The translations under genes were made by a program, and so were the position numbers. Under the pieces are notes generated by a model. The model made no database searches. It was not told the origin of the DNA and worked only from the letters and a program-made list of their open reading frames with translations. 64,000 nucleotides of DNA from Tubulanus polymorphus (Eukaryota > Animalia > Nemertea), in assembly GCF_964204645.1 (NCBI RefSeq), contig NC_134030.1, positions 2,153,355-2,217,354 of the forward strand. Reading direction: 5' to 3'. Positions within the stretch are counted from its first letter, which is position 1. Each line of letters starts with the position of its first letter. Shown one piece after another: positions 18,153 through 48,649 of this stretch.

Positions 18153-18283
18153 CGGACTATTGGCATTCGAGGAATCATCCAGCCAATGAAAACAGAGGAA
18201 TCATCCAGCCAATGAAAACAAAGGAATCATCCAGCCAATAAAGTTGTGTTTCACAAAGTCAATAGCGTCTTTGTTATGCAAAT
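18140..18283. promoter_or_regulatory. Promoter-like cluster: ETS core, three 26-bp CCAAT repeats, octamer
   Basis: ACTTCC at ~18142, (GGAATCATCCAGCCAATGAAAACAGA)x3 at 18170-18241, ATGCAAAT at 18276-18283, directly upstream of the minus-strand first exon. Confidence 0.5.
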
Positions 18284-18529
18284 ACGACATGAAGCTGTAT
18301 AGCCAAGTGGATAAGTTCAATAAGTCTCGTTGCTAGCTTTCAATCATTGTACAGGACCTGGAAAGCAAAAAACCCTTGGACTGCCAATCGCACCAGTTGA
18401 GCCAATCTCATAAAACTCTGCAAAAACAGTTGAGATCAGAAAAATAAGATCAAAGAAAAGTCCAAGTTAGGGTCAAGGTTTACTCTATATTTGATTCATC
18501 TGAAAATGTTTCTAGTTATGGAACTGGCC

Positions 18530-23300: not shown

Positions 23301-26300
23301 AAACTTGTTTCATGGAACAAATGGTGCTGCAAACAAACAATATCATCGAACAATGATTTATTCTGATTTACTACAGTGGACTTCGCTCAAGTGTTTTTGG
23401 GACCGTAAAAATGTGTCCGACTTGAGAGTGATATCTGAGTTGGATGTTATTATGTATTTCACCTCACAAAAAAATATCACAAAAATATCTGAGTTGATCG
23501 GATCAGAGTTGATCGAATCTGACTACAGAGTCTACTATAAAGTGAATCGCCCTGCCCTACTACTGGTTTTAAAAGCAATTATTGAGATAGATTCAAACCC
23601 AGTTCAATTACTATATTTCCTATATATACACTTACTGCCGGGTGGTACTGGTACATAGGCATTTGAGAGAGAGGAGAGAGAGAGGGAGAGAGAGAGAGAG
23701 CCATAAAGAACCTGAAGAGTGGGGGGTTTAGTCCAGTGGTCTATTCCTACCTCGACTCAAAAAAAAAGAAAAAAGATATAAAGAGCGGGGTCCGAGAGCA
23801 ATTCGAAGGTTCAGTCCCCTGTCCGCCTAGCGGGTAGGCAGTGGTCTATTCCTACCTCGACTCAAAAAAAAGGTGAGCTTAAAGCCACCAAGCACGAAAG
23901 TGGGGTCCGAAGGGTAGTCCTCTGCTGGCTTAGAGGGCAGGCATTGGTCTATTCTTACCTCACGTGCTTAAAAATGTTCACAAAAAATGGCTATTAAGAG
24001 AGAGAAAGAGATAGTGTGAGAGAGAGTGAGAGAGAGGAGGTGCTAAGTCTCATGTACCGCTGGGCTTTACTTGATACATATATAAGAAGTAATTTACGGT
24101 TTAAACCTTGAATTTACTAACAATTTTTGTGGGTTCAGAGTCTATTTCTCAACAGTTTGCTGTTAACAAGCTGGTAGTAGGGTAAAAACTACCGGTATTC
24201 AGAGATTTGTGAATCAGAAGTTTTGCCGTCATTTGCTTCATGAATCATTCACTTGTTAAAATGAATCATGTGACACACATGTAAAATACTGTTACTGATT
24301 TATCATTGTTTTGATGGTGTCTTAATGTTCAATATCTTGCAGGTATCATCTCCTTGCATTTCGCATAGAATTGAGGAGTAGTTTGAGCGAATGGGAGGCA
24401 TGGAGAGATTTGGCTCAAGATATCTCACTCGTTCGTTTAGGTTTAGTTTGAGATCATCTAATCAGCTTAAGTGTATACATCCTCGACTACTTTTCAACTA
24501 GTAGTTCATCGTAGGTTTTAGACGTCACATCCATAGCTCCTTCCACTACTCGTGAATTTACAATTCATTCCTATCCGATGATGCTATTTATGATGGAATG
24601 TGTTAAAGTAGATGTCTATGTGTTTTCATCTTTTGGTAAATCGTGAAAAAATCTGGCTAATTTGAATCGAAAGCCATTGATTATTATCTTGCGCGGTAAT
24701 GATGGAAAAATTCAAAATACAGTGATCTGGGGGCCCTCCCCTAGAAACATTTTGAAAATTCAATCGCCGGAGATGCGTTTTGGGACCATTTCACGGTCTC
24801 ATTCACAGAAGCATGAGAAGTCGTGAGTCAACCACCTAGTACAGAGAACGACGAGCTGCTACGCGGTTCAGCGTGCTTTTGAAAAGAAATTTTGTTAAGC
24901 AAAAAAGTGGGGCAGCTTCACCCCTTTTCCGACGGCCCTGGTTTTGAAGGGATAGAAGGCATTGAGATGTCTAAAGGGATTGCCTGGAGGTGGCTGAGAG
25001 ATGGATGCCATTTCCACCATACCTATCACTCATCACATCCTGTAGTGTCCTAGCCTCACCCCCTACATCACATCGTGTACCTCCCGAACTACACTACCAA
25101 CCTTCTTCAGACGCCACCCATCCCGACCATTTCTACCGAATTCACCCTAGCCTCAACAACACCAAACATCCTTCCCCCACATCACCCAAACTTACACTTT
25201 CATATTTCTCTGACCATGCCTTACCCTATCCTTAACACTGTACACCAGCCCTTACCCTACACAAACCATACAATCATCACACCTGCACCGCCCTCTACCA
25301 GCAACCTTTCTCTGTTATCATACACCTCCCTAACTATACATTGTACACTACCACATACACCCACCCGAAACAGTTCTATATTAAACTGATCTTCTAATCC
25401 AGCCATATCAAACAACCCTCCATCATCTTACCTGACCTTACCTTACCACAATGTCCTATCCTCCCCTAACGTGTCAACTCCCATACCCTGTCTCATTCCA
25501 TACCCAAGCGCCATAACACTCATTCCCTCTATGATTAGATGAGTAGAAATGTTACGATGTTGTTGTTAGACGGATGGGATTGATTCTTATCGCTAATGAA
25601 CATGAGAGAACAAACATTCTTCAAACTGAGGAGGAATAAATGAACGAATGACTGCAGTTTTACACAGTCAATGTTACATGTACATTAGTTATATCTCAAT
25701 TAGACTGAAACAATGAGTGAAACTTCTACAGTTATAATCTGACACAAATCAGACTGAATTAGAAAATGTTTCACAACTTTCTATTTTTCAGACACTTTGG
25801 TTTCAGATGTGCTTCATTATCTATTCAAATAGAATCTGATATCATTTCATTTCATTTGCTCTGATTAGGTTGATTCACTTGGTTACTGTACGGAACTGAT
25901 CTAGAGCTGATGTGAAGTGAGCTGAACCCAAACGGTCCATAACTCTGAGCTAGCTTCATATACGATGGAGACGCATGGAGCCGAATTCAATTCATTTCAA
26001 CAACCTTTTCTTTCATATTGATTGAAAGTCCACTGCTCGAGCAAGATACAAACATAGGTGTGCACATTTTGTATGAAGTGAATTTATAAATTTGAAAGTC
26101 TTATTTCTTAGTTTGAGAGAAGGATGTCCCCTTGAACATATTTCAACTCCACACGACAAGTGGTATGTATGAAGGTATAATTTCTTGCTTTAGAATCTGA
26201 TAAAAACAATATCATTGAATCTGTTGTTTTCATTTCAGTGTCAAATGTATGAACTAGTAGCTGATTTGAATGGAACTCTACTGTCTGACACTCGTGGTTT

Positions 26301-28059
26301 GTATTGAGACTTTTCAGATATTCATATAAAAATAAACAACTTATTTCATCATTAACAATTTTATAATTTTTTTCCTACAGTTTAAAGAATCTGTGAAAGG
26401 CGATGATCTGCTAATTACACTCATGGTTGTGTTGGCTACTGATGAGTGGTATGTATCGTATCTGGAACCAATTTTACTTTGATTTCAACAACTAATTTCT
26501 TATGATTTTCTCCATTTCATTTTCCATTAGAAGGAACTGTGTTATTATGATTTGTCTGAGTGTCCGTTAATGTTAGTTGAACTGTAACTCAGAGAACTGA
26601 ACCATGGATGTGACAACTCCACACAGATGTCATGTATGTATCTGGACAATTTTCATTATCAATGTCTTTCTGTTTTAGTTTTCCTGCAGAAGAATCTGAT
26701 AAATATAATGTTATGGACTTTGTGTTTTTCTTTTTAGTGTCCATCATCATTAGTTTAACTGTAGCCGATAACTTAAAACCTAAACCGAGGATGTAATATT
26801 GCCACAGATATCATGTATGTATCACGACAACTTATGTTATCAACGTCTTTCTGTTTTATTCTTTTTCTGTTCTGCAGAAGAATCATGAATATCATTGAAT
26901 CTGTTATTTTCATTTCAGTGTTCGTCATAATAAGCTGAACACATAAATAATAAACGTACAAACTCCACTGGTAGAGTCACCTACAGACACATGGTATGTG
27001 TATAGAGACAAATTCAATGAATCTGAAATACTTTGTTTCTTAGTTATAAATGTTTTTCCATATTGTTTTAATCTGTTAGGAGATGAACTGAACAAATCAA
27101 CAGTTCAAATCCTCCATCAATAAGTGGTATGTATGAAGACAGAATTTCAACAACTTATTTCATAATTTCCTGCAATAGAATCTGATAAATCTGAATCTGT
27201 TGTTTTCATTTCAGTGTCAATCATTGTTCGTTGAACTGTAAAGAATGAATGAACCAACATCTTATTTGAACTGAACTTTAGAGTCCATGGTTGAGTCAGC
27301 TATAGACATACAGTATGTGGTATGTGGGTATGGAGGCAATTTCAATTTAATTGAAACACTTGTTTCATTATAATTATTTATGATTATTATGATTATCCAT
27401 TTTGTTTTAATCTGTTTAGGAGAAACCTGAACCAAGGATGTTATATTGCCACAGATATCATGTATGTATCACAACAACTTTTGTTATCAACGTCTTTCTG
27501 TTTTATTCTGTTTCTGTTCTGCAGAAGAATCTGAGATGAATATAATGTTATGGACTGAATGTGTTTTTCATTTCAGTTTCCATCAATGTTAGTTGAACTG
27601 TAACTCAGAGAAGTGAACCGTGGATGTTATAACTCCACAGATGTCATGTATGCATCTGGACAATTTTCATTATCAATGAATATCTGTATTTTTCGAAATC
27701 TATGAAATAGATGTCATTGAATCTGTTATCTTCATTTCAGTGTCCTAAGTTGAACAGTAAAGGATAGAACCAATAGCTGAATTGAACTGAACTCCTCCGG
27801 CAATGTTTGAGTCAGCTTCAGATATGAGTGGTATGTGTGTATGGAGACGAATTCAATTTGTGAGAATCTGTGAGATATAAATGTTACAATGTAGAATTTG
27901 TTATTTTCATTTCAGTGTCCATCAATATTAAGCTGAACTGATTCAGAATGAACTTATAGATAATGAACTGAATTGCTGGAGTCAGCTACTACTGGTCTGT
28001 GGTATGTGGTTGGAGTCAGAAACTCATCAATTACTTCATGATTTCTAGTAATATAATCT

Positions 28060-28286
28060 CAGAGCTGCCAACAGTTACTGATTTCCTGTATTTGTTGTTT
28101 CTACCAGTATTTGATAACAAGAAATACTGATTTGATTTGTTTGATGTGCACATAAATGTGAAAGATGTGACTGATGATCTACCATTGATTGCTGATGAAT
28201 TGAACGTTTTCTTTCACATTTCATTGAAATGTTACTGAAAAAAGCTCAATTTGTTACTGAAAGCACCTCAGAGGTTGGCAGCCCTG
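28060..28286. mobile_element. hAT-like MITE inserted in an array intron
   Basis: TIRs CAGAGCTGCCAAC / GTTGGCAGCCCTG flanked by the direct repeat TAATCT. Confidence 0.75.
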
Positions 28287-31200
28287 TAATCTGATAAATA
28301 AATGTAATAAACAGATTGTTCTCATTTCAGTGTCCGATCAATGTTAGTTACACTATAAGGAATAGACCCAGTAGCTGAATTGAACTGAACTGATCCACAG
28401 TGAATGTTTGAGTCACCTTCAGATATTAGTGGTATGTCTGTATGCAGACAAAATTCTATTTTAACAACTGATTTTGTGTTTTAAATCTTTGAAATAAGTA
28501 GGCCTATAATATCATTGAATCTGTTATTTTCATTTCAGTGTTTGTCATTATAAGCTGAACTGGTAAATGATAAATGTACAAACTCCACTGGTTGAGTCAC
28601 CTACAGACACATGGTATGTGTATAGAGACAAATTCAAAGAATCTGAAATACTTTGTTTCTTAGTTATAAATGATTTTCCATTTTGTTTTAATCTGTTTAG
28701 GAGAAACCTGAACCAAGGATGTTATATTGCCACAGATATCATGTATGTATCACGACAACTTTTTTTATCAACGTCTTTCTGTTTTATTCTATTTCTGTTC
28801 TGCAGAAGAATCTGAGATGAATATAATGTTATGGACTGAATGTGTTTTTCATTTCAGTTTCCATCAATGTTAGTTGAACTGTAACTCAGAGAAGTGAACC
28901 GTGGATGTTATAACTCCACAGATGTCATGTATGCATCAGGACATTTTTCATTATCAATGAATATATGTTTTGTTTTTTCGAAATCTATGAAATAAATGTG
29001 ATTGAATCTGTTATTTTCATTTCAGTGTCCTAAGTTGAACTGTAAAGGATAGAACCAATGGCTGAATTGAACTGAACTCCTCAGTCAATGTTTGAGTCGG
29101 CTTCAGATATGAGTGGTATGTGTGTATGGAGACGAATTCAATTTGTGAGAATCTGTGAGATATAAATGTTACAATGTAGAATTTGTTATTCTCATTTCAG
29201 TGTCCATCAATATTAAGCTGAACTGATTCAGAATGAACTTATAGATAATGAACTGAATTGCTGGAGTCAGCTACTGGTGTGTGGTATGTGTATATGCAGA
29301 CAAAATTCTATTTTAACAACTGATTTTGTGTTATAAATCTTTAAAATAAGTAGGCCTATAATATCATTGAATCTGTTATTTTCATTTCAGTGTTTGTCAT
29401 TATAAGCTGAACTGGTAAATAATAAACGTACAAACTCCACTGGTTGAGTCACCTACAGACACATGGTATGTGTATAGAGACAAATTCAATGAATCTGAAA
29501 TACTTTGTTTCTTAGTTATAAATGATTTTCCATTTTGTTTTAATCTGTTAGGAGATGAACTGAACAAATCACCAGTTCAAATCCTGTATCAATAAGTGGT
29601 ATGTATGAAGACAGATTTTTAACAACTTACATCATAATTTCCTGCAATAGAATCTGATAAATCTGAATCTGTTGTTTTCATTTCAGTGTCAATCATTGTT
29701 CGTTGAACTGTAAAGAATGAATGAACCAACATCTTATTTGAACTGAACTCTACAGTCCATGGTTGAATCAGCTATAGACATACAGTACGTGGTATGTGGG
29801 TATGGAGGCAATTTCAAGTGATTTCAAACACTTGTTTCATTATAATTATTGTAAATGATTATAAATTTTATTATCCATTTTGTTTTAATCTGTTTAGGAG
29901 AAACCTGAACCAAGGATGTAATATTGCCACAGATATCATGTATGTATGACGACAACTTTTGTTATCAACGTCTTTCTGTTTTATTCTGTTTCTGTTCTGC
30001 AGAAGAATCTGAGATGAATATAATGTTATGGACTGAATTCGTTTTTCATTTTAGTTTCCATCAATGTTAGTTGAACTGTAACTGAGAGAAGTGAACCGTG
30101 GATGTTATAACTCCACACAGAAGTCATGTATGTATCAGGACAACTTTCATTATCAATGAATATCTGTTTAAATTTTTCGAAATCTATGAAATAAATGTCA
30201 TTGAATCTGTTATTTTCATTTCAGTGTCCTAAGTTGAACTGTAAAGGATAGAACCAATAGCTGAATTGAACTGAACTCCTCCAGCAATGTTTGAGTCAGC
30301 TACAGATATGAGTGGTATGTGTGTATGGAGACGAATTCAATTTGTGAGAATCTGTGAGATATAAATGTTACAATGTAGAACTTGTTATTCTCATTTCAGT
30401 GTCCATCAATATTAAGCTGAACTGATGCAGAATGAACTTATAGATAATGAACTGAATTGCTGGAGTCAGCTACTGGTATGTGGTATGTGTGTATGCAGAC
30501 AAAATTCTATTATTTTAACAACTGATTTTGTGTTTTAAATCTTTAAAATAAGTAGGCCTATAATATCATTGAATCTGTTATTTTCATTTCAGTGTTCGTC
30601 ATAATAAACTGAACTGGTAAATAATAAACGTACAAATTCCACTGGTTGAGTCACCTACAGACACATGGTATGTGTATAGAGACAAATTCAATGAATCTGA
30701 AATACTTTGTTTCTTAGTTATAAATGATTTTCCATTTTGTTTTAATCTGTTAGGAGATGAACTGAACAAATCAACAGTTCAAATCCTGTATCAATAAGTG
30801 GTATGTATGAAAACAGAATTTCAACAACTTATTTCATAATTTCCTGCAATGGAATCTGATAAATCTGAATCTGTTGTTTTCATTTCAGTGTCAATCATTG
30901 TTCGTTGAACTGTAAAGAATGAATGAACCAACATCTTATTTGAACCGAGTTCCACAGTCCGTGGTCGCTTCAGCTACTGACATACAGTACGTGGTGTGTG
31001 TATGGAGGCAATTTCAATTGATTTCAAACACTTGTTTCATTATAATTATTGTAAATGATCATGATTTTTATTATCCATTTTGTTTTAATCTGTTTAGGAG
31101 AAACCTGAACCAAGGATGTAATATTGCCACAGATATCATGTATGTATCACGACAACTTTTGTTATCAACGTCTTTCTGTTTTATTCTTTTTCTGTTCTGC

Positions 31201-34200
31201 AGAAGAATCTTGAGATGAATATAATGTTATGGACTGAATGTGTTTTTCATTTTAGTTTCCATCGATGTTAGTTGAACTGTAACTGAGAGAAGTGAACCGT
31301 GGATGTTATAACTCCACAGATGTCATGTATGTATCAGGACAACTTATATTATCAATGAATATCTGTTAAAATTTTCTAAATCTATGGAATAGATGTCATT
31401 GAATCTGTTATTTTCATTCCAGTGTCCAAAGTTGAACTGTAAAGGATAGAACCAATAGCTGAATTGAACTGAACTCCTCCAGCAATGTTTGAGTCAGCTA
31501 CAGATATGAGTGGTATGTGTGTATGGAGACGAATTCAATTTGTGAGAATCTGTGAGATATGAATGTTACAATGTAGAACTTGTTATTCTCATTTCAGTGT
31601 CCATCAATATTAAGCTGAACTGATTCAGAATGAACTTATAGATAATGAATTGAATTGCTGGAGTCAGCTACTGGTGTGTGGTATGTGTGTATGCAGACGA
31701 AATTCTATTATTTTAACAACTGATTTTGTGTTTTAAATCTTTAAAATAAGTAGGCCTATAATATCATTGAATCTGTTATTTTCATTTCAGTGTTCGTCAT
31801 AATAAACTGAACTGGTAAATAATAAACGTACAAATTCCACTGGTTGAGTCACCTACAGACACATGGTATGTGTATAGAGACAAATTCAATGAATCTGAAA
31901 TACTTTGTTTCTTAGTTATAAATGATTTTCCAAATTGTATATTAATCTGTTAGGAGATGAACTGAACAAATCAACAGTTCAAATCCTGTAGCAATAAGTG
32001 GTATGTATGAAGACAGAATTTCAACAACTTATTTCATAGTTTCCTGCAATAGAATCTGATAAATCTGAATCTGTTATTTTCATTTCAGTGTTTGCCATAA
32101 TAAACTGAACTGGTAAATAATTAACGTACAAACTCCACTGGTTGAGTCACCTACAGACACATGGTATGTGTATAGAGATTAATTCAATGAATCTGAAATA
32201 CTTTGTTTCTTAGTTATAAATGATTTTCCATTTTTTTTAAATCTGCTAGGAGAGGAACTGAACAAATCAACAGTTCGAATTCTGTATCAATAAGTGGTAT
32301 GTATGAAAATAGAATTTCAACAACTTATTTCATAATTTCCTGCAATAGAATCTGATAAATAACTGCCATTGAATCCGTTGTTTTCATTTCAGTGTCAATC
32401 ATTGTTCGTTGAACTGTAAAGAATGAATGAACCAACATCTTATTTGAACTGAACTCTACAGTCCATGGTTGAATCAGCTATAGACATACAGTACGTGGTA
32501 TGTGTGTATGGAGGCAATTTCAATTTATTTGAAACACTTGTTTCATTATAATTATTGTTAATGATTATTATGATTATCCATTTTGTTTTAATCTGTTTAG
32601 GAGAAACCTGAACCAAGGATGTTATATTGCCACAGATATCATGTATGTATCTCGACAACTTTTGTTATCAACGTCTTTCTGTTTTATTCTGTTTCTGTTC
32701 TGCAGAAGAATCTGAGATGAATATAATGTTATGGACTGAATTCGTTTTTCATTTTAGTTTCCATCAATGTTAGTTGAACTGTAACTCAGAGAAGTGAACC
32801 ATGGATGTTATAACTCCACACAGAAGTCATGTATGTATCAGGACAACTTTCATTATCAATGAATATGTTTTATTTTTCGAAATCTATGAAATAGATGTCA
32901 TTGAATCTGTTATCTTCATTTCAGTGTCCTAAGTTGAACAGTAAAGGATAGAACCGATAGCTGAATTGAACTCAACTCCTCCGGCAATGTTTGAGTCAGC
33001 TACAGATATAAGTGGTATGTGTGTATGGAGACAAATTCAATTTGTGAGAATCTGTGAGATATAAATGTTACAATGTAGAATTTGTTATTCTCATTTCAGT
33101 GTCCTTCAATATTAAGCTGAACTGATTCAGAATGAACTTAAAGATAATGAACTGAATTGCTGGAGTCAGCTACTGGTGTGTGGTATGTGTGTATGCAGAC
33201 AAAATTCTATTTTAACTACTGATTTTGTGTTTTATAAATCTTTAAAATAAGTAGGCCTAAAATATCATTGAATCTGTCATTTTCATTTCAGTGTTTGTCA
33301 TTATAAGCTGAACTGGTAAATAATAAACGTACAAACTCCACTGGTTGAGTCACCTACAGACACATGGTATGTGTATAGAGACAAATTCAATGAATCTGAA
33401 ATACTTAGTTTCTTAGTTATAAATGATTTTCAATTTTGTTTTAATCTGTTAGGAGATGAACTGAACAAATCAACAGTTCAAATCCTGTATCAATAAGTGG
33501 TATGTATGAAGACAGAATTTCAACAACTTATTTCATAATTTCCTGCGATAGAATCAGTTAAATCTGAATCTGCTGTTTTCATTTCAGTGTCAATCATTGT
33601 TCGTTGAACTATAAAGAATGAATGAACCAGCATCTTATTTGAACTGAACTCTACAGTCCATGGTTGAGTCAGCTATAGACATACAGTACGTGGTATGTGG
33701 GTATGGAGGCAATTTCAATTGATTTCAAACACTTGTTTCATTATAATTATTGTTAATGATTATTATGATTATCCATTTTGTTTTAATCTGTTTAGGAGAA
33801 ACCTGAACCAAGGATGTTATATTGCCACAGATGTCATGTATGTATCACAACAACTTTTGTAATCAACGTCTTTCTGTTTTATTCTGTTTCTGTTCTGCAG
33901 AAGAATCTGAGATGAATATAATGTTATGGACTGAATGTGTTTTTCATTTCAGTTTCCATCAATGTTAGTTGAACTGTAACTGAGAGAAGTGAACCATGGA
34001 TGTTATAACTCCACACAGAAGTCATGTATGTATCAGGACAACTTTCATTATCAATGAATATATGTTTTGTTTTTTTGAAATCTATGGAATAGATGTGATT
34101 GAATCTGTTATTTTCATTTCAGTATCCGAAGTTGAATTGAAAAGGATAGAACCAATGGCTGAATTGAACTGAACTCCTCCGTCAATGTTTGAGTCAGCTA

Positions 34201-37200
34201 CCGATATGAGTGGTATGTGTGTATGGAGACGAATTCAATTTGTGAGAATCTGTGAGAAATGAATTTTATAATGTAGAACTTGTTTTTCTCATTTCAGTGT
34301 CCATCAATATTAAGCTGAACTGATTCAGAATGAACTTAAAGATAATGAACTGAATTGCTGGAGTCAGCTACTGGTGTGTGGTATGTGTGTATGCAGACAA
34401 AATTCTATTTTAACTACTGATTTTGTGTTTTGTAAATCTTTGAAATAAGTAGGCCTAGAATATCATTGAATCTGTTATTTTCATTTCAGTGTTTGTCATA
34501 ATAAGCTGAACTGGCAAATAATAAACGTACAAATTCCACTGGTTGAGTCACCTACAGACACATGGTATGTGTATAGAGACAAATTCAATGAATCTGAAAT
34601 ACTTTGTTTCTTAGTTATAAATGTTTTTCCATATTGTTTTAATCTGTTAGGAGATGAACTGAACAAATCAACAGTTCAAATCCTCCATCAATAAGTGGTA
34701 TGTATGAAGCCAGAATTTTAACAACTTATTTCATAATTTGCTGCAATAGAATCTGATGAATAATTGCCATTAAATCTGTTGTTTTCATTTCAGTGTCAAT
34801 CATTGTTCGTTGAACTGTAAAGAATGAATGAACCAACATCTTATTTGAACTGAACTCTACAGTCCATGGTTGACTCAGCTATAGACATACAGTACGTGGT
34901 ATGTGGGTATGGAGGCAATTTCAATTTATTTGAAGCACTTGTTTCATTATAATTATTGTTAATGATTATTATGATTATCCATTTTGTTTTAATCTGTTTA
35001 GGAGAAACCTGAACCAAGGATGTTATATTGCCACAGATATCATGTATGTATCTCGACAACTTTTGTTATCAACGTCTTTCTGTTTATTCTGTTTCTGCAG
35101 AAGAATCTGAGATGAATATAATGTTATGGACCGAATGTATTTTTCATTTTAGTTTCCATCGATGTTAGTTGAACTGTAACTCAGAGAAGTGAACCATGGA
35201 TGTTATAACTCCACAGATGTCATGTATGTGTCTGGACAACTTTCATTATCAATGAATATCTGTTTAAATTTTTCGAAATCTATGAAATAGATGTCATTGA
35301 ATCTGTTATCTTCATTTCAGTGTCCTAAGTTGAACTGTAAAGGATAGAACCGATAGCTGAATTGAACTGAACTCCTCCGACCATGTTTGAGTCAGCTACA
35401 GATATGAGTGGTATGTGCGTATGCAGACGAATTCAATTTGTGAGAATTTGTGAGATATAAATGTTACAATGTAGAATTTGTTATTCTCATTTCAGTGTCC
35501 ATCAATATTAACCTGAACTGATTCAGAATGAACTTATAGATAATGAACTGAATTGCTGGAGTCAGCTACTGGTGAGTGGTATGTGTATATGCAGACAAAA
35601 TTCTATTTTAACAACTGATTTTGTGTTTTATAAATCTTTAAAATAAGTAGGCCTATAATATCATTTAATCTGTTATTTTCATTTCAGTGTTTGTCATAAT
35701 AAACTGAACTGGTAAATAATAAACGTACAAACTCCACTGGTTGAGTCACCTACAGACACATGGTATGTGTATAGAGACAAATTCAATGAATCTGAAATAC
35801 TTTGTTTCTTAGTTATAAATGATTTTCCATTTTGTTTTACTCTGTTAGGAGATGAACTGAACAAATCAACAGTTCAAATCCTGTATCAATAAGTGGTATG
35901 TATGAAAACAGAATTTCAACAACTTATTTCATAATTTCCTGCAATAGAATCTGATAAATCTGAATCTGTTGTTTTCATTTCAGTGTCAATCATTGTTCGT
36001 TGAACTGTAAAGAATGAATGAACCAACATCTTATTTGAACTGAACTCTACAGTCCATGGTTGAGTCAGCTATAGACATACAGTACGTGGTATGTGGGTAC
36101 GGAGGCAATTTCAATTGATTTCAAACACTTGTTTCATTATAATTATTGTTAATGATTATTATGATTATCCATTTTGTTTTAATCTGTTTAGGAGAAACCT
36201 GAACCAAGGATGTTATATTGCCACAGATATCATGTATGTATCACGACAACTTTTTTTATCAACGTCTTTCTGTTTTATTCTATTTCTGTTCTGCAGAAGA
36301 ATCTGAGATGAATATAATGTTATGGACTGAATGTGTTTTTATTTCAGTTTCCATCAATGTTAGTTGAACTGTAACTGAGAGAAGTGAACCGGGGATGTTA
36401 TAACTCCACACAGAAGTCATGTATGCATCTGGACAACTTTCATTATCAATGAATATCTGTTTAAATTTTTCGAAATCTATGAAATAGGTTTCATTGAATC
36501 TGTTATTTTCATTTCAGTGTCCAAAGTTGAACTGTTTAGGATAGAACCAATAGCTGAATTGAACTGGACTCCTCCAGCAATGTTTGAGTCAGCTTCAGAT
36601 GTGAGTGGTATGTGTGTATGGAGACGAATTCAATTTCTACAAGTGATTTTGTGATTTAATTTCTGAAGAGGAATCTTACAAAGATAAATGTCATAGAGTC
36701 TGTTGTTTTCATTTCAGCGTCCATCATTATCATTAGTTCAACTATAAGGAGTAGAACCATGATGACTCCTCCAGCAATGTTTGAGTCAGCCTCAGATATG
36801 AGTGGTATGTGTGTATGGAGACAAATTCAATTTGTGAGAATCTGTGAGATATAAATGATACAATGTAGAATTTGTTATTCTCATTTCAGTGTCCATCAAT
36901 ATTAAGCTGAACTGATGCAGAATGAACTTATAGATAATGAATTGAATTGCTGGAGTCAGCTACTGGTGTGTGGTATGTGTATATGCAGACAAAATTCTAT
37001 TTTAACAACTGATTTTGTGTTTTAAATCTTTAAAATAAGTAGGCCTAAAATATCACTGAATCTGTTATTTTCATTTCAGTTTTTGTCATTATAAGCTGAA
37101 CTGGTAAATAATAAACGTACAAATTCCACTGGTTGAGTCACCTACAGACACATGGTATGTGTATAGAGACAAATTCAATGAATCTGAAAAACTTTGTTTC

Positions 37201-37883
37201 TTAGTTATAAATGATTTTCCATTTTGTTTTAATCTGTTAGGAGATGAACTGAACAAATCAACAGTTCAAATCCTGTATCAATAAGTGGTATGTATGAAAA
37301 CAGAATTTCAACAACTTATTTCATAGTTTCCTGCAATAGAATCTGATAAATCTGAATCAGTTGTTTTCATTTCAGCGTCAATCATTGTATGTTGAACTGT
37401 AAAGAATGAATAGCTGAATTGCCGAATCGAACTCCTCAGTTAGTGGTTGAGTCGCCTTCAGATATTAGTGGTATGTGTTTTAGTGGCTGAAAAAATTCAA
37501 TTTTGTATTTTAATTTCTGAAGAGGAATCATACAAAGATAAATGTTGTAGAATCTGTTGTTTTCATTTCAGTGTCCGTCAATATTAGTTGAACTATAAGG
37601 ATGATAGCTGAATTGAACTGAACTCCTTAGTCAATGTTTGAGTCACCTTCAGCAGATATGAGTGGTATGTGTTTATGGAGACGAATTCAATTACTGATTT
37701 TGTGATTTATTTTCTGTAGAGATTAATGTTATTGAATCTGTTGTTTTCATTTCAGTGTCATTGATTATTAGTTGAACTGTAAGGAGTGAAACCAAAAGCT
37801 GATTTTAAGTGAGCTCCACGGTCGATGTTTGAGTTGTACCGGTATGTATTGCGAGCAGATAAAACAGCTTACATTTATAATTA

Positions 37884-38607
37884 CAGTGAACCCCCGATAT
37901 ACCGCCCTCCCATTTACCGCCATCCCCGCGCCTGCCGCCAGGTTTTCTCAATGTACATCTCTATCTCGCATCGACTATTGCAACAGTTTGTTAATTGGAT
38001 TATCTGCAGACTTAACGCATAAACTTCAAGTTCTCCAGAATTCAGCTGCACGTTTGGTATCTAGGTCACACAAATTCGACCATATCACTCCAGTTCTTCA
38101 GGACCTACACTGGCTACCTGTTTCTGCAAGAATCCAGTATAAAGTCGCTCTGTTAACGTTCAAGGCATTGAATAACCTGGCTCCAGTATACTTATCCGGA
38201 TTATTACAAGTCTCTGTACCTGTCAGACTTCTATGTTCTGCCAATCAGGAGGACTGGTTGTTCCTATTTTCCGCTTGTCTTTATATGGTGGCAGAACATT
38301 CTCCACATATGCTCCCAGATTGTGGAATAACCTTCTTGCGGACATACCTGACCCCATGTCTTTGTCTTGTGAATCATTCAAGCGAACACTCAAAACCGTT
38401 CTTTTCCCTGCCAGTTACTTATAGTTTCTAGAGGGGCTCATTTGAACTTATATTCTTAAGGAGCCTTGCGCTATATAAATGACAATTTATTATTATTATT
38501 ATTATTATACAAATACATAGGAAAACACCCCCGATATACCGCCATACTCTGATCTATACCGCCAAAATCGTGTGCTCTGATGTGGGCGGTATATCGGGGG
38601 TTGACTA
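37884..38607. mobile_element. Tc1/mariner (pogo/Tigger-like) MITE hosting the L2 insertion
   Basis: TA|CAGTGAACCCCCGATATACCGCC ... GGCGGTATATCGGGGGTTGACT TIRs; uninterrupted relative at ~48650-48808. Confidence 0.75.
37961..38507 (+). mobile_element. 5'-truncated L2-clade (CR1 group) LINE, 3' end of ORF2
   Basis: SRIDYCNSLL...KLQVLQNSAARLV...HITPVLQDLHWLPV..RIQYKV signature, frameshifted continuation (YGGRTFSTYAPRLWNNL), (ATT)n tail. Confidence 0.9.
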
Positions 38608-38620
38608 CATGATTCTGTTA

Positions 38621-38772
38621 TAGTAACTTCACATTACTCGGACATGGCACCGAGTCAGACTTTGGACTAATTCTGACAAAAAAAAATTTTTTTTCTGACT
38701 CCCTTATGCATTTTCCTATTGTTATCCTAAACAATTTTGCTGGTTTGTCCGAGTAAGGCGAGGTCTACTGTA
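38621..38772. mobile_element. Short pogo-like MITE
   Basis: Degenerate TIRs tagtaacttcacattactcggaca / tgtccgagtaaggcgaggtctactg|ta. Confidence 0.5.
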
Positions 38773-41037
38773 TTTTACCACAAAACAATATCTTATAAAT
38801 ATCAGTGAATCTGTTATTTTCATTTCAGTGTTCGTCATAATAAGCTGAACTCGTAAATAATAAACGTACAAACTCCACTGGTTGAGTCACCTACAGACAC
38901 ATGGTATGTGTATAGAGATTAATTCAATGAATCTGAGAATACTTTGTTTCTTAGTTATAAATGATTTTCCATTTTGTTTTAATCTGTTAGGAGATGAACT
39001 GAACAAATCAACAGTTCAAATCCTGTATCAATAAGTGGTATGTATGAAGACAGAATTTCAACAACTTATTTCATAATTTCCTGCAATAGAATCTGATAAA
39101 TAATTGCCATTAAATCTGTTGTTTTCATTTCAGTGTCAATCATTGTTCGTTGAACTGTAAAGAATGAATGAACCAACATCTTATTTGAACTGAACTCTAC
39201 AGTCCAAGGTTGAGTCAGCTATAGACATACAGTACGTGGTGTGTGGGTATGGAGGCAATTTCAATAAATTTGAAACACTTATTTCATTACTATTATCAAT
39301 GATTTTCCATTTTGTTATAATCTGTTTAGGGGATGACAAATTGCCAGAGATGACCATGGATCAGTCGACATGTATGTATCAGGACAATTTTTGTTGTGTA
39401 GAGTAATCTAGAGAGGGATAAATCTTTAAGAATCTGTCATTTCTAATTTCAGTGTCCATCATCATGAGTTAATACGAATATCTGATTTGAACTGAACTAG
39501 GCAGTCATTCAACAGTCGAGATGCCTGTCACATATATAAGTTACGTATTTACTGCCAGCAGACAATTAAAACAACTTGCATCATTAATGATTAACTGTGA
39601 ATGAACTTGGGAACAGTCGTGCTCCTTAATACTATCAGTTACAGCCATATTTTGATATAATATCTGTCTAAACCTCTATCTCAATCCTTAACTTAATAAA
39701 TACTAATTCTTCCTTCTAACCTTCTACTAATTGTATGAGTCAAGAGATGGTTGTCATTGATAGAATTAGGTCCGCTATACTGACTAATTGTCATAATTTA
39801 TAATACCACTGCATACTATTGACTCTCCGTTTCAGTTTAATTGATTCAATAAGTCACCAACTTGTTATTTTCATTTCAGTGTCAATCATTATTAGTTGAT
39901 CTGCAAAGACTCAAACTGAATTCACTGCTGCTACAGATACACAATCAATCAATACAGTTCAATCAACTTTGAGACACTTATTTCTTTTAAATCGGCTAAG
40001 TGGTATGTATTAACACATAGGGGCGGATGTAACAAAATTGAAAAACTGGTTAAAATTGATATGTCATTCTACGTATTTTCAGCTACAAGTACCAGTTCCC
40101 CATTATTTCTACCAAATTCTGACCACAATCAATTCTTGAAAGACTCCTGGACAATGAAGAAGAAAGATTCATACAAACATAAGGTACTAGTAATTTTATT
40201 AATGAATGATTTTACTTATTATAAGTACAAGATTATTGACATAATTTCTTTAGTTATAGTATAAGTTAAAGTAAAGCTTATACTTTCATAGATTAATAGG
40301 TATGTTTATTGAACATTTTAATCAGTAAATTGGTGCTAATATTAGATGACAATAGTAGTTGATGAATTCATTATTGAAAGTACTTAGATCTTTTAGAATC
40401 GTATTCATTAAAGGTGCCGCCGCACACCAGATGGCACCACGTTATGGTCATTTTTACTACTAGACTGGTTGCCTGATGTGATAAATACAATACAATGAAC
40501 TTTATTCACATGTAATAACTGATACTAACCGCGATCATTTGTACCCATGTGGCACCCGTGTGAACAGTTTATCCGGGCCAAATTTGGCCCGACCAAAAAC
40601 GTCTGACCAAGCCGAGCCACGGGACAAATGATTGCGGTTGAAATGCAACTTGTTCCTGAAACTGCTCACGCTTTCAGTTTGTTGAGCGTTGTTTTAGTAG
40701 TCAAGGTTAGCGTGTGAGCCAGTCGGGCCAATTGGCTCGGGTCAGATCTGTGCTTGGTCTCTGGGCCAAACGTATACGTGTGATCGCAGCCAATATCTAT
40801 ACAAGCGCAGCCAAAACCTGCAGGCTGCATGATTCTGCGTAGTAGCTTGTCGAATTCTTCGCAACTGGCAACCAGATCTATATAGACCTATCGGAATCAT
40901 CGCTTGCCGCGTTAGCAGAGCTGTCTCGTGTAGTTAATAAGTGTTTATGTATTAATTGTAGGAATGCCTGGTGATGTAGAGCTTGAAGTTCATAGAAGCT
41001 GAAAACAGAGAAACCGGCTCTGAATCTATTGTGTATA

Positions 41038-41072
41038 AATAAATATATTTATTCTTGTGTTGTGTTGTTTAT
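41038..41072 (+). terminator. Poly(A) signal plus downstream GU-rich element (copy 1; also 44235 and 47671)
   Basis: AATAAA followed ~15 nt later by TTGTGTTGTGTTGTTT, about 76 nt after the acceptor ttaattgtag|GAATGCC. Confidence 0.6.
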
Positions 41073-41300
41073 TCAGTGGGATCTGTGGTGATTCAACCAC
41101 TTGATCCTGCAAGTGTTTTTGCCATCCAAACCCCGAATCCATGCGCGTTGTTTTGACCGACGAAAGTTTTAAAGTGATACACAAATCTTAAGGAAATCTA
41201 AAGACTAGTACCGGTAATAAGATTTATTGATCACTTTCTAAACTTCAGACAAGTCTTTAATTGATGTTAGATTGGTTAGATAAAGAAAAGACTGGACTTA

Positions 41301-41390
41301 GGCCCAGTTGCACAGTCGTTACTTGATCTGGACTTAAGACGTCAGACTGCTTGTCTTGATTCCATTCAGTCGTGACTGTGCACCTTGGCC
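41301..41390. mobile_element. ~90-bp Harbinger-like MITE family (further copies ~47932, ~48454; related start at ~19856)
   Basis: GGCCCAGTTGCACAGTCGTTACT ... AGTCRTGACTGTGCACCTTGGCC. Confidence 0.6.
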
Positions 41391-43966
41391 AAGGTCTTTT
41401 AACTCTATCAAATATCAGTTGCAGCTGCCTCTTGACGAATGATCTAACCTTTTATCTTATCTATCCTAACATGATCCTTAACTGCTTAATTCTCTATCAC
41501 CAATTTCACAAGTCAAAAGGTAGTTGTCATTGATAAAATAGATGTAGTCACTGCGAAACAATTGTAATTAATTTGAAACTTGATGCATTGATGCTCACTC
41601 TTAAGAGTGTTCACTTTCAGATCCACAGAGACTAAAAGTGATCTATAGTGTTTAAATCTAATTACCAAAGTTCAGACAAGTCTTTAAATATTGCTAATTT
41701 GTGAAATAGAGAATAGACTGGACTTAATCTGGTGTTAAGACGTCAGACTGCTAGTCTTGAATCCATTGAGTCATGACTGCACCTTGGCCAAGGTCTTTTG
41801 ACTTCATTAAATATCAGTTGCAGCTACCTCTTGACGTAATCTAACCTTTTATCTCATCTATCCTAACATAATCCTTAACTGCTTGATTATCCACCAATTT
41901 CACAAGTCAAAAGGTAGTTGTCATTGATTAAATAGATGTAGTCACTGCGAAACAATTGTAATTAATTTGAAACTTGATGCATTGATGCTCACTCTTAAGA
42001 GTGTTCACTTTCAGATCCACAGAGACTAAAAGTGATCTATAGTGTTTAAATCTAATTACCAAAGTTCAGACAAGTCTTTAAATATTGCTAATTTGTGAAA
42101 TAGAGAATAGACTGGACTTAATCTGGTGTTAAGACGTCAGACTGCTAGTCTTGAATCCATTGAGTCATGACTGCACCTTGGCCAAGGTCTTTTGACTTCA
42201 TTAAATATCAGTTGCAGCTACCTCTTGACGTAATCTAACCTTTTATCTCATCTATCCTAACATAATCCTTAACTGCTTGATTATCCACCAATTTCACAAG
42301 TCAAAAGGTAGTTGTCATTGATAAAATAGATGTAGTCACTGCGAAACAATTGTAATTAATTTGAAACTTGATGCAATGATGTTCACTCTTAGAGTGTTTA
42401 CTGTACGTGGTATGTGTGTATGGAGGCAATTTCAATTAATTTGAAACACTTTATTTCATTACTATTATCAATGATTTTCCATTTTGTTATAATCTGTTTA
42501 GGAGATGACAAATTGCCAGAGATGACCATGGATCAGTCGACATGTACCGGTATGTATCAGGACAATTTTTTGTTGTGTAGAGAAATCTAGAGGGATAAAT
42601 CTTTAAGAATCTGTCATTTCTAATTTCAGTGTCCATCATCATGAGTTAATACGAATATCTGATTTGAACTGAACTCGGCAGTCATTCAACAGTCGAGATG
42701 CCTGTCACATATATAAGTTATGTATTTACCGCCAGCAGACAATTAAAACAACTTGCATCATTAATGATTTACTGTTTGTGGATGAACTTGAGAACAGTCG
42801 CTGCTCCTTAATACTATCAGTTACAGCCATATTTTGATATAATATCTGTCTAAACCTCTATCTCAATCCTTAACTTAATAAATACTAATTCTTCCTTCTA
42901 ACCTTCTACTAATTGTATGAGTCAAGAGATGGTTGTCATTGATAGAATTAGGTCCGCTATACTGACTAATTGTCATAATTTATAATACCACTGCATACTC
43001 TTGACTCTCCATTTCAGTTTAATTGATTCAATAAGTCACCAACTTGTTATTTACATTTCAGTGTCAATCATTATTAGTTGACCTGCAAAGACTCAAACTG
43101 AATTCACTGCTGCTACAGATACACCATCAATCAATACAGTTCAATCAATTTTGAGACACTTCTTCTAAATCTTTCTTTTAAATCGGCTAAGTGGTATGTA
43201 TTAACACATAGGGGCGGATGTAACAAAATTGAGAAACTGGTTAAAATTGATATGTCATTCTACGTATTTTCAGCTACAACTACCAGGTCCCCATTATTTC
43301 TACCAAATTCTGACCACAATCAATTCTTGAAAAACTCCTGGACAATGAAGAAGAAAGATTCATACAAACATAAGGTACTAGTAATTTTATTAATGAATGA
43401 TTTTACTTATTTATTGAACATTTTAATCAGTAAATTGGTGCTAATATTAGATGACAATAGTAGTTGATAAATTCATTATTGAAAGTGCTTAGATCTTTGA
43501 ATCGTATTCATTAAAGGTGCCGCCGCACACCAGATGGCACCACTTTACGGTCATTTTACTACTAGACTGGTTGCCTGTGTAATAAATACAATACAATGAA
43601 CTTTATTCACATGTAATAACCGATTCTAACCGCAATCATTTGAACCCATGTGGCACCCGTGTGAACAGTTTATCCGGGCCAAATTTGGCCCGACCAAAAA
43701 CGTCAGACCAGGCCGAGCCACAGGACAAATATTGCGTTTGAATTGCAACTTGTTCCTGAAACTACTCATGCTTTCAGTTTGAGCGTTGTTTTAAGTATCG
43801 GTTAGCGTGTGAGCCAGTCGGGCCAATTGGCTCGGGTCAGATCTGTGCTTGGTCTCTGGGCCAAACGTGTGATCGCAGCCAATATCTATACAAGCGCAGC
43901 CAAAGCCTGAAGGCTGCATGATTCTGGCATAGCTTGTTGAATTCTTGATTCGCAACTGGCAACCGG

Positions 43967-44068
43967 AACCCAGTTCCACAGTTGTGATTTGACTCAGAGT
44001 TAACTCATTGAAAATTAACTAATTTTAACTCAAGAGTTAACTCTAACTCATGACTGTGGAACTGGACC
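43967..44068. mobile_element. PIF/Harbinger-type mini-MITE with CGG TSD, present only in the middle 3' module
   Basis: CCAGTTCCACAG ... CTGTGGAACTGG; copies 1 and 3 have the empty site ggcaaccagat. Confidence 0.8.
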
Positions 44069-44527
44069 CGGATCTATATAGACCTATCGGAATCATCGCT
44101 TGCCACAGTTAGCAGTGCTGTCTCGTGTAATTGATAAGTGTTTATGTATTAATTGCAGGAATGCCTGGTGATGTAGAGCTTGAAGTTCACAGAAGCTGAA
44201 AACAGAGAAACCGGCTCTGAATCTATTGTGTATAAATAAATATATTTATTCTTGTGTTGTGTTGTTTATTCAGTGGGATCTGTGGTGATTCAACCACTTG
44301 ATCCTGCAAGTGTTTTTGCCATCCAAACCCCGAATCCATGCGCGTCGTTTTGACCGACGAAAGTTTTAAAGTGATACACAAATCTTAAGGAAATCTAAAG
44401 ACTAGTACCGGTAATAAGATTTATTGATCACTTTCTAAACTTCAGACAAGTCTTTAATTGATGTTAGATTGGTTAGATAAAGAAAAGACTGGACTTAGGC
44501 CCAGTTGCACAGTCGTTACTTGATCTG

Positions 44528-44859
44528 AGGCCTTTTTATGAACCAGCAAAATCGAAATAGATTAGCTATTTAGATTATATAGCCGATTAGTGTCAATTAG
44601 CATAACCGGGTATGTTGGTTGATAAAAACGCCAGGTAGAAATTATTCAATTATGGCCCAGTCAGCAGCGACTTCTACCGAGAACACCATATCGGTTGGAT
44701 TAGATAATCGGCATACTTGCTCGCCGAGCGAGTATGCCGAGTATGCTAATCGATTATGATAACCAATGTTCATAAAAATGACGGATTATGACATAATCCA
44801 TGCTCATAAAAACGTTTTGCATACTCGAATATACTAATCGAGTGTTCGTAAAAAGGCCT
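44528..44859. mobile_element. PIF/Harbinger-type MITE with CTG TSD, present only in the middle 3' module
   Basis: TIRs AGGCCTTTTTATGAAC / GTTCGTAAAAAGGCCT; empty site gatctggtcttaag at paralogous positions. Confidence 0.85.
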
Positions 44860-47800
44860 CTGGTCTTAAGACGTCAGACTGCTAGTCTTGAATCCATTGA
44901 GTCATGACTGCACCTTGGCTAAGGTCTTTTAACTTCATTAAATATCAGTTGCAGCTACCTCTTGACGTAATCTAACCTTTTATCTCATCTATCCTAACAT
45001 AATCCTTAACTGCTTGATTATCTACCAATTTCACTAATTCAAAAGGTAGTTGTCATTGATAAAATAGATCATATAGTCACTGCGAAACAATTGTAATTAA
45101 TTTGAATTTTGATGCATTGATGTTCACTCTTAGTGTTTACTATCATCATCATCATCAGCAACCGTCTGGGTCGGTTGCTCTAAGGTTGCGCTTTATCCAG
45201 CGGATGAATACCTTAGAAGAACGGACTTAATTGTCTCTATGTCAGACCCACAGCGACTGGTAATAAGATTTATTGATCACTTTCTAAACTAAAGACAAGT
45301 CTTTAATTGATGTAAGATTGGTTATAGAGAATAGATCGGACTTAGGCCCATTTGCACAGTCGTTACTTGATCTGGTCTTAAGACGTCAGACTGCTTGTCT
45401 TGAATCCATTCAGTCATGACTGTGTTTAATTCTATTATTAGCTGTAGCTACCACTTGACGAATGATCTAACCTTTTATATCATCTATCCTAACATGATAA
45501 ATACTAATCATTCACTGCTTAATTTTCCACCAATTTCACTGAAGTCAAAAGGTATTTGTCATTGATAAAATAGATATAGTCACTGCGAAACAATCGTAAT
45601 TAATTTGAAACTTGATGCATTGATGTTCACTCTTAGGTAGTTTACTTTCATCTAAGATTTATTGTTATATACCGCCATACTCTGTACCTATGCGGGCTGG
45701 TTTGTCCGAGTAAGGCGAGGTCTACTGTATTTTACCACAAAACAATATCTTATAAATATCAGTGAATCTGTTATTTTCATTTCAGTGTCAATCATTGTTC
45801 GTTGAGCTGCAAAATGAATGAACCAACATCTTAATTGAACTGAGTTCCACAGTCCATGGTCGCTTCAGCTACTGACATACAGTGCGTGGTATGTGTGTAT
45901 GGAGGCAATTTCAATAAATTTGAAACACTTATTTCATTACTATTATCAATGATTTTCCATTTTGTTATAATCTGTTTAGGTGACGACAAATTGCCAGAGA
46001 TGACCATGGATCAGTCGACATGTATGTATCGGGACAATTTTTTGCTGTGTAGAGTAATCTAGAGGGATAAATCTTTAAGAATCTGTCATTTCTAATTTCA
46101 GTGTCCATCATCATGAGTTAATACGAATATCTGATTTGAACTGAACTCGGCAGTCATTCAACATGTGGAGCCTGTCACACATATAAGTTATGTATTTACT
46201 GCCAGCAGGCAATTAAAACAACTTGCATCATTAATGATTTACTGTTTGTGGATGAACTTGAGAACAGTCGCTGCTCCTTAATACTATCAGTTACAGCCAT
46301 ATTTTGATATAATATCTGTCTAAACCTCTTTCTCTCCTTAACTTAATAAATACTAATTCTTCCTTCTAACCTTCTACTAATTGTATGAGTCAAGAGATGG
46401 TTGTCATTGATAGAATTAGGTCCGCTATACTGACTAATTGTCATAATTTAAAATACCACTGCATACTCTTGACTCTCCATTTCAGTTTAATTGATTCAAT
46501 AAGTCACCAACTTGTTATTTTCATTTCAGTGTCAATCATTATTAGTTGATCTGCAAAGACTCAAACTGAATTCACTGCTGTCAGAAGGCTTCAGATACAA
46601 AATCAATCAATACAGTTCAATCAACTTTGAGACACTTATTTCTTTTAAATCGGCTAAGTGGTATGTATTAACACATAGGGGCGGATGTAACAAAATTGAA
46701 AAACTGGTTAAAATTGATATGTCATTCTACGTATTTTCAGCTACAAGTACCAGGTCCCCATTATTTCTACCAAATTCTGACCGCAATCAATTCTTGAAAG
46801 ACTCCTGGACAATGAAGAAGAAAGATTCATGCAAACATGATAAGGTACTAGTAATTTTATTAATGAATGATTTTACTTATTATAAGTACAAGATTATTGA
46901 CATAATTTCTTTAGTTATACTTTCATAGATTAATAGGTATGTTTATTGAACATTTTAATCAGTAAATTGGTGCTAATATTAGATGACAATAGTAGTTGAT
47001 AAATTCATTATTGAAAGTGCTTAGATCTTAGAATCGTATTCATTAAAGGTGCCGCCGCGCACCAGATGGCACCACTTTATGGTCATTTTTACTACTAGAC
47101 TGGTTGCCTGGTGTAATAAATACAATACAATGAACTTTATTCACAGGTAATAACTGATACTAACCGCGATCATTTGTACCCATGTGGCACCCGTGTGAAC
47201 AGTTTATCCGGGCCAAATTTGGCCCGACCAAAAACGTCAGACCAAGCCGAGCCACGGGACAAATGATTGCGTTTGAATTGCAACGTGAACTCCTGAAACT
47301 GCTCACGCTTTCAGTTAGAGCGTTGTTTTAGTATCAAGGTTAGCGTGTGAGCCAGTCGGGCCAATTAGCTCGGGTCAGATCTGTGCTTGGTCTCTGGGCC
47401 AAACGTATACGTGTGATCGCAGCCAATATCTATACAAGCGCAGCCAAAGCCTGAAGGCTGCATGATTCTGCGTAGCTTGTCGAATTCTTCATTCGCAACT
47501 GGCAACCAGATATATATAGACCTATCGGAATCATCGCTTGCCACGTTAGCAGTGCTGTCTCGTGTAATTAATAAGTGTTTATGTATTTATTGTAGGAATG
47601 CCTGGTGATGTAGAGCTTGAGTTCACAGAAGCTGAAAACAGAGAAACCGGCTCGGAATCTATTGTGTATAAATAAATATATTTATTCTTGTGTTGTGTTG
47701 TTTATTCAGTGGGATCTGTGGTGATTCAACCACTTGATCCTGCAAGTGTTTTTTGCCCATCCAAACCCCGAATCCATATGCGTCATTTTGACTGACTTAA

Positions 47801-48649
47801 GTTTCAAAGTGATACACAAATCTTAAGGAAATCTAAAGACTAGTACCGGTAATAAGATTTATTGATCACTTTTTAACTAAAGACAAATCTTTAATTGATG
47901 TTAGATTGGTTAGAGAGAATTGATCGGACTTGGGTCCAGTTGCACAGTCGTTACTTGATCTGGTCTTAAGACTAGCAGTCTTGAATCCATTCAGTCATGA
48001 CTGTGCACCTTGGCCAAGGTCTTTTAACTCTATTAAATATCAGTTGCAGCTACCTCTTGACGAAATCTAACCTTATCTTATCTATCCTAACATGATAAAT
48101 ACTAACCATACACTGCTTAATTCTCTATTACCAATTTCACAAGTCAAATGGTAGTTGTCATTGATAAAATAGATATAGTCACTGCGAAACAATTGTAATT
48201 AATTTGAAACTTGATGCATTGATGTTCACTCCTTAATAATAGTGTTTACTTGCATCATCAGCAACTTGATATTCGTCTGGTTCGGTTGCGCTTTAACCAG
48301 CGGATACAATACCGTAGTTAAAACACGCCTAATTGTCTCTATGTCAGATCCTCAGAGACTAAAAGTGATCTACAGTGTTTAAATCTTATTGCCATAGTTC
48401 AGACAAGTCTTTAAATATTGCTAATTTGTGAAATAGAGAATAGACTAGACTTAGGCCCAGTTGCACAGTCGTTACTTGATCTGGTCTTAAGACGTCAGAC
48501 TGCTCGTCTTGGATCCATTCAGTCATGACTGTGCACCTTGGCCAAGGTCTTTTAACTCTATCAAATATCAGTTGCAGCTACCTCTTGACGAATGATCTAA
48601 CCTTTTATCTTTTGTCAAAAGGTAGTTGTATGTCAATGATAAAATAGAT

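Follow-up and report, generated by a model that had tools for sequence, protein, structure and literature searches.

A 64,000-nucleotide (nt) stretch of the genome of the nemertean Tubulanus polymorphus (contig NC_134030.1, positions 2,153,355 to 2,217,354 of the forward strand; hereafter the window, with positions counted from its first nucleotide) carries a long tandem array of short blocks, each of them bounded by what look like splice sites, and the question that this locus raises is whether such an array is a satellite or a gene. Our data suggest a model whereby the array is probably a spliced non-coding RNA gene with amplified exons and represents a single, hugely expanded copy within a gene family that is dispersed and apparently non-coding. 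From the DNA sequence, we put at roughly one in two the probability that the members of this family are spliced non-coding transcription units, that the internal exon block of the copy in the window was amplified about ten-fold, and that this copy, if transcribed, would give an RNA of about 5 kb.

Exon-like units were defined by a chain rule, applied to 26.0-39.5 kb, that takes a YAG preceded by a tract of at least 70% pyrimidine and then a GT[AG][TC]G 40-135 nt further on. On the plus strand this rule returned 66 units and 58 intron links of 70-130 nt, compared with 3 units and no links on the minus strand, a mean of 6.2 units and 0.14 links in 50 dinucleotide shuffles, and 1-9 units with 0-2 links in other 13.5-kb parts of the window. 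Three further units of the type called B below are intact though they fall under the pyrimidine threshold, and we therefore count 69 units in the array proper, which occupies about 13 kb (26.1-39.4 kb) of the plus strand. A YAG acceptor and a GT donor of the GTATGT type are present in all 69. The exon-like units have a median length of 75 nt (range 42-124), the introns that separate them measure 82-117 nt (median 97 nt, with 58 of 65 at 80-120 nt), and the module formed by one exon and one intron has an average period of about 171 nt. The original prediction, made from the sequence of the window, had described a 1.2-kb satellite as an alternation of exon-like units and short introns, and these counts bear it out; its figure of 85-90 units was too high, as was its end of the array at 47,700. 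The array proper stops near 39.4 kb, and position 47,700 corresponds to the third poly(A) signal of another repeat; because this different repeat, at 39.4-48.6 kb, has only about four exon-like units per copy, the total comes to about 80.

Direct-repeat analysis gave a copy spacing of 1195-1206 nt between about 26.9 and 37.1 kb, that is, a 1.2-kb higher-order repeat, the copies of which are 92-97% alike and the blocks of which hold seven units each, A to G. Units B (47 nt) and D (42 nt) were thought to use a different acceptor, and in both we read TTTTAATCTGTT(T)AG/GAG (here and below, a slash marks the border between intron and exon). The array and the repeat that follows it are laid out as follows.

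26113-26918, plus strand: lead-in of unique exon-intron modules, 83-95% identical to paralogous loci on contigs C2, C3 and C6.
26919-37079, plus strand: higher-order repeat zone, with about 8 complete and 3 partial copies of the 1.2-kb A-G block.
36518-37841, plus strand: more strongly diverged distal modules, all with TTTCAG as acceptor and GTATGT as donor.
37860-38790, no strand: nested insertion in an intron, not belonging to the array, with the inverted ends CCCCCGATATACCGCC and GGCGGTATATCGGGGG.
38829-39370, plus strand: last partial repeat copy, with units A, B and C and a D-like unit.
39389-48600, plus strand: triplicated 3' segment, a 3.2-3.5-kb repeat in about 2.7 copies.

The higher-order repeat zone is interrupted by a 537-nt insertion at 28002-28538. 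The nested insertion at 37860-38790 contains a 213-codon open stretch with an LHWLP-type motif, for which a Pfam search gave no match, and the paralogue on contig C2 has a shorter version of this insertion in the same place.

A head-to-tail, homogenised higher-order repeat with such spacing and similarity is what is expected of a satellite, and in this respect the array is one; satellites are also expected to be free of gene-like signals and to form many arrays or a centromeric block of one family, whereas here the splice signals are strand-specific and the genome holds a single large array. The comparison with alpha satellite illustrates both sides. In alpha satellite, a homogenised higher-order repeat, amplified by unequal exchange, is built of sub-units of about 170 nt, and the array resembles it in the length of its sub-units and in its homogenised higher-order repeat; in contrast to alpha satellite, the sub-units of the array bear strand-specific canonical splice signals and belong to a gene-like unit, one end of which is promoter-like and the other poly(A)-like. 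The array introns also agree in size with the minimal introns of the adjoining WD40-repeat gene, as had been proposed: the three that we read in this gene measure 84, 86 and 90 nt, and on this basis we assign the introns of the array to the minimal-intron class of the genome.

Among the array copies the splice dinucleotides are invariant, in agreement with the original prediction. In an alignment of six complete copies and one partial copy of the 1.2-kb block, none of the 28 splice-dinucleotide columns is variable, compared with 156 of the 1166 other columns (13%; P = 0.019), and in clusters of modules from the window and the paralogous loci the corresponding figures are 0 of 40 and 346 of 2041 (P = 6e-4), the two data sets overlapping, the P values being modest and the copies being related by descent. 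Modules were found by a profile of exon interiors only, so that the splice sites had no part in their detection. Three apparent splice-site variants turned out to be misaligned ends of partial copies. The exon-interior profile distinguishes 23 module types, about 74% identical to the consensus per column, and in the alignment of these types we read the homologous acceptor as kept in about 20 and the homologous donor in 22; at least two of the exceptions have an upstream acceptor instead.

One such displaced acceptor can be traced to its source. In unit D, the polypyrimidine tract and AG that form the acceptor are 75% identical to the 5' third of an E-type exon, and the acceptor of that exon itself has been lost in D; because the tract and AG of D align with the start of the E-type exon, we conclude that the 3' splice site moved and was rebuilt from former exon sequence. 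Unit B has the same pattern of acceptor shift. The conversion of exon sequence into a new 3' splice site would be hard to explain without the spliceosome. In the family copy on contig C7, both AG and GT are missing from the B module, whereas four other copies keep the two sites; joint loss of this kind would be expected under exon definition, where the two sites matter only as long as the exon is used.

The array has no coding capacity. Stops in all frames, which the original prediction had noted in the units it checked, are found in 52 of 68 units, the exceptions being mostly the 42-nt units, and the most conserved exon block, TTAGTTGAACTGTAA, by itself closes all three frames. No long open frame is common to the repeat copies on either strand, and stop trinucleotides are only slightly enriched in the exons (410, compared with 385 +/- 11). 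We considered a tandem array of coding exons, encoding either a repetitive protein or mutually exclusive exons, and rejected it because of the stops in all frames, even inside TTAGTTGAACTGTAA.

The introns, for their part, carry no cargo that we could find, which agrees with what had been noted at first. Rfam gave no matches at the gathering score and none at E<=1. When the seven exons and seven introns of one block were folded, the z-scores ranged from -2.3 to +1.8 and were mostly near 0; the one fold in this block that beats its shuffles is that of the 47-nt B exon (z = -2.3), and the introns fold like shuffled sequence. These results bear directly on the idea that the array is a host gene for intronic small RNAs (small nucleolar RNA, microRNA or mirtron) in the manner of SNHG14 or C19MC. 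SNHG14 (SNORD116/115) and C19MC consist of tandem non-coding units of exon and intron, in which the splice sites are kept and the introns carry small nucleolar RNAs or microRNAs, which are the product. The array shares the tandem layout of exon and intron, one of each per repeat as in those host genes, and its splice sites are likewise kept across copies. However, its introns are of minimal length, so that 82-117 nt would leave little room for a small RNA; their z-scores of -0.8 to +1.8 include no hairpin, and the Rfam matches are missing at both thresholds. We therefore regard a small-RNA host as so improbable as to be nearly negligible. A feature confined to the exons is the sequence UGAAC, which occurs 27 times in 18 exon types and not once in 13 introns, with UGAACU motifs carried by 14 of the 18 exon types, and which may act in splicing, as an enhancer, or be bound by a protein.

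The relatives of the array were sought in the whole genome (268 Mb) with one 1.2-kb block and with the acceptor-exon 15-mer TTTCATTTCAGTGTC, and 20-kb stretches from twelve loci were then used for paralogue comparison. The block alone finds related DNA on at least eight contigs, and in all at least 25 loci belong to the family, spread over nine contigs and both orientations, with 80-93% identity and similar ends. The 15-mer occurs 62 times in the genome, 18 times in the window and 1-6 times at each other locus; by neither search does the genome contain another large array of this family, the other loci having 1-10 modules. Homology between paralogues is far wider than the array: apart from a few modules and the 3' segment, it includes 13.85 kb, 16.5-17.05, 17.4-18.2, 23.1-24.7 and 25.15-25.9 kb. 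A unit of about 8 kb is common to five copies, on contigs C1, C2, C5, C6 and C7; it comprises a first-exon-like element, inverted-repeat arms, 3-10 modules and then a poly(A) signal, and in the dispersed copies the right edge of this unit lies about 120 nt past the AATAAA/GU-rich element. In the window, the parts of the unit to the left of the array are the following.

13845-13888, plus strand: conserved first-exon-like element, with which the family unit begins on the left, ACTTCCGGTGTGGAG...CCGCCATATTGAAATT, then a GTAAGT donor at 13889.
17336-18208, no strand: left inverted-repeat arm, containing a decayed module, reversed and without donor.
25151-26012, no strand: right inverted-repeat arm, module-like, with the acceptor ..ctctgattag/GTTGATTC and no GTATGT donor.

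With up to 2 mismatches allowed, the first-exon-like element occurs 17 times in the genome; for 14 copies the agreement with the tested motif is exact and includes GTAAGT. At least 13 of these loci have a module downstream on the same strand, mostly 5.4-8.1 kb away, and in at least 13 loci the first-exon element, the modules and the poly(A) signal all point the same way. The element contains motifs that look like ETS and YY1 sites. The two arms are 91% complementary where 17501-17866 is compared with 25481-25846. A tract of about 500 nt at 25000-25520, judged by eye, is C- and A-rich but G-poor on the plus strand, with a G/T-rich mirror at 17830-18080 in the other arm, and this C/A-rich tract is kept in dispersed copies. 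Central between the arms there is a GC-rich, GACCTGTCTGCCCATGGG-like minisatellite (18500-19300) with periods of 32, 64 and 125 nt, and 18-20 kb is the most GC-rich stretch of the window (49% GC).

The number of modules differs widely among the copies: basic copies have 3-4, those on C2 (20.79 Mb), C3 and C6 (0.6-1.8 Mb) have 5-10, and that in the window has 69. The C2 copy is about 90% identical to the window over 17.4-26.8 kb and continues with modules in the same order, without amplification, which indicates that the amplification arose within the window's copy. The first description of the locus as a satellite built to be spliced thus stands as regards the spliceable-looking units and was overstated as regards the satellite, which is a local amplification in one copy of a family of 3-10 modules. 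The amplification itself may be neutral. The family is also found in series on two contigs: C3 holds at least nine copies, about 45 kb apart, at 430000-1300000, and further copies lie about 100 kb apart at 0.6-1.8 Mb on C6. Over at least 15 kb, the copies on C6 agree with one another at 97-99%, and the agreement between C6 and C3 is 95-98%; because of this high identity we place the copies on both contigs in large segmental duplications.

The dispersal of the family suggests another explanation, namely that it is a dispersed repeat or a mobile element, whose splice-like blocks serve a role at the level of DNA, such as protein binding or a nucleosome-length periodicity, and are never spliced. 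Loci of similar ends spread over nine contigs in both orientations would fit this explanation, as would the average module period and the many conserved columns outside the splice sites. Yet neither terminal repeats, whether inverted or long, nor poly(A) tails nor clear target duplications mark the ends, and the left boundary varies between copy pairs, though the ends are similar in five copies. The tested open frames, which leave the central 7 kb less than exhaustively searched, contain no transposase or reverse-transcriptase domain. Moreover, the blocks are the exact 3' and 5' splice consensus, on one strand only, and the acceptor shift described above made a new pyrimidine tract and AG. We consider an element of this kind unlikely. 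Retroposition of the family unit was rejected, since the copies retain introns and have no poly(A) tail.

At the other end of the unit, each copy of the triplicated 3' segment has a terminal-type exon without donor (starting at 39453, 42630 and 46102) and two further exon-like units (39880-40002 and 40083-40186, and copies thereof). The original prediction had the array end in terminal exons with AATAAA and a GU-rich element, and we found this arrangement three times, with AATAAA followed 12 nt on by the GU-rich TGTGTTGTGTTG (41038/41056, 44235/44253 and 47671/47689). Inside the segment lies a 394-nt tandem repeat at 41321-42402. An open stretch of 114-141 codons is repeated in all three copies (39920, 43102 and 46503); we rejected it as coding, since the part tested (46512-46928) has no match in Pfam and the paralogous loci are unaligned there.

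A further explanation is that the units of the array are untranslated exons of a protein-coding gene, either the WD40 gene, on the same strand, or the upstream open frame at 16,801-17,076. The start codon of the WD40 gene (50,141) lies about 2.4 kb past the last poly(A) signal, and the upstream frame, which has 92 codons and encodes 16-residue repeats, is situated after the first-exon element and before the array. However, paralogue homology ends at about 49.4 kb, short of the WD40 gene, three poly(A) signals stand in between, and no pyrimidine-rich acceptor precedes the WD40 start. The upstream frame is a GVVQEQHHRSSKSSIV-like minisatellite on the plus strand with a 48-nt period and no match in Pfam; its counterpart in the C5 copy has a 23-nt period, which does not preserve the frame, and the upstream frame is therefore probably not coding. 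A role as untranslated exons is thus very unlikely.

The WD40-repeat gene itself has several exons, is on the plus strand with its ATG at 50141, and runs past the end of the window (50141-63645), with PF00400 over the cut-off in the exons at 62.6 and 63.4 kb. An intron-less open frame of 382 codons (58365-59513, plus strand) contains a rhodopsin-family seven-transmembrane receptor domain (PF00001, E = 1.7e-19); with WD40 exons on either side, at 57.2 and 62.6 kb, this frame probably sits within one of the WD40 gene's introns. A 72-nt satellite at 60111-61248 has 16 copies that are 97% alike. No Rfam family, hammerheads included, reaches the gathering score anywhere in the window.

A search of sequencing runs found three runs with 21-26% of the sampled words of 25.9-35.9 kb and one possible RNA run under the same species label, and the runs were compared on 24100-28540, which has no long internal repeat. 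There the three runs behave as DNA, their contigs crossing exon and intron unbroken. Their depth in the array is 250-390, compared with 28-52 on unique sequence, which is consistent with the copy number.

Several observations weigh against a transcribed and spliced array, in addition to the limits given above for the two conservation tests. On 24100-28540, none of the three runs, all of them DNA, has a GT..AG joint, and the one doubtful RNA run has no contig there and none of the sampled words of 25.9-35.9 kb, a weak result that lacks a positive control. The start of transcription is placed by motif resemblance only. In the repeat alignment, exons (11.7% of columns variable) are not clearly different from introns (15.4%) or from polypyrimidine tracts (13.2%). 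When five dispersed copies are compared, variation is seen in 2 of 8 splice-site columns and in 16.6% of columns elsewhere, and we conclude from this that some copies of the family are decaying. In addition, 49 of 186 columns are at least 90% conserved, many columns outside the splice sites being equal to them; the modules of the inverted-repeat arms are without donors; and a strict branch-point motif is not enriched (11 of 66, compared with a background of 10.5%). We also dropped the notion that exons are more conserved than introns: a two-fold gap was seen in the module clusters only, is absent from the unbiased repeat alignment, and probably reflects non-homologous flanks.

These points bear on the explanation that the array is a silent relic. 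The family unit would be, or would have been, a spliced gene, and the amplified array would be a recent neutral macrosatellite that is now neither transcribed nor spliced, in which the signals persist because the copies are young (92-97% alike) and homogenised. It would account for the lack of RNA-run sequence on the array (one doubtful run and three DNA runs), for the similar variability of exons and introns among repeat copies, for a test of splice dinucleotides within the array that reaches only P = 0.019, for the decayed modules of the family (the B module of the C7 copy and the donor-less modules of the arms) and for an expansion seen in the window's copy only (18 of the 62 acceptor 15-mers of the genome). 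On the other hand, both dinucleotides are kept in 69 of 69 array units while 13% of other columns vary, and sites are likewise kept or rebuilt in module types whose divergence long predates the amplification. We regard a silent relic as the main alternative to a spliced gene and give it limited credence.

If the array is a spliced non-coding RNA gene, the following steps may be proposed. Transcription would begin at the promoter-like first exon at 13,845-13,888 on the plus strand, with its GTAAGT donor, would pass through the inverted-repeat region and then the exon-intron modules, and would end at an AATAAA with GU-rich element, the first at 41,038 and its duplicates at 44,235 and 47,671. The seven-module, 1.2-kb block was multiplied about ten-fold, most likely by unequal exchange, to give the 69 units. 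If the locus is transcribed, the spliceosome would remove the introns of 82-117 nt, leaving an RNA of about 5 kb that contains no reading frame and is composed of related exons of 42-105 nt, most of them with UGAACU motifs. Such an RNA might serve as a multivalent protein-binding platform; a sink for the exon junction complex, circular RNA and a source of PIWI-interacting RNA (piRNA) are speculation. The broader proposal that the genome maintains loci of amplified, cargo-free mini-exons that selection keeps spliceable, the product being a UGAACU-type protein-binding RNA or splicing itself, seems to us doubtful.

The closest described case is FIRRE, a long non-coding RNA in which the local repeat RRD occurs in 7 of 13 human and 11 of 23 mouse exons, and serves as an RNA domain for nuclear retention via hnRNPU (PMC4820808). 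Similarly, the repeat described here would fall in exons of a predicted non-coding RNA, and in the array, as in FIRRE, canonical signals flank the repeated exons and there is no conserved reading frame. In contrast to FIRRE, the array has about 70 repeated exons rather than about 10, a regular 1.2-kb higher-order repeat, minimal introns and a dispersed multi-copy family. If it is silent, the array would be an ordinary gene-derived tandem repeat. Transcription and splicing, if they occur, would make it an exceptionally extreme case of a non-coding RNA with repeated exons, with about 70 related and cargo-free exons, in a family of at least 17 loci, and this family would offer a natural series of 3, 10 and 70 modules in which the effect of exon number may be probed.

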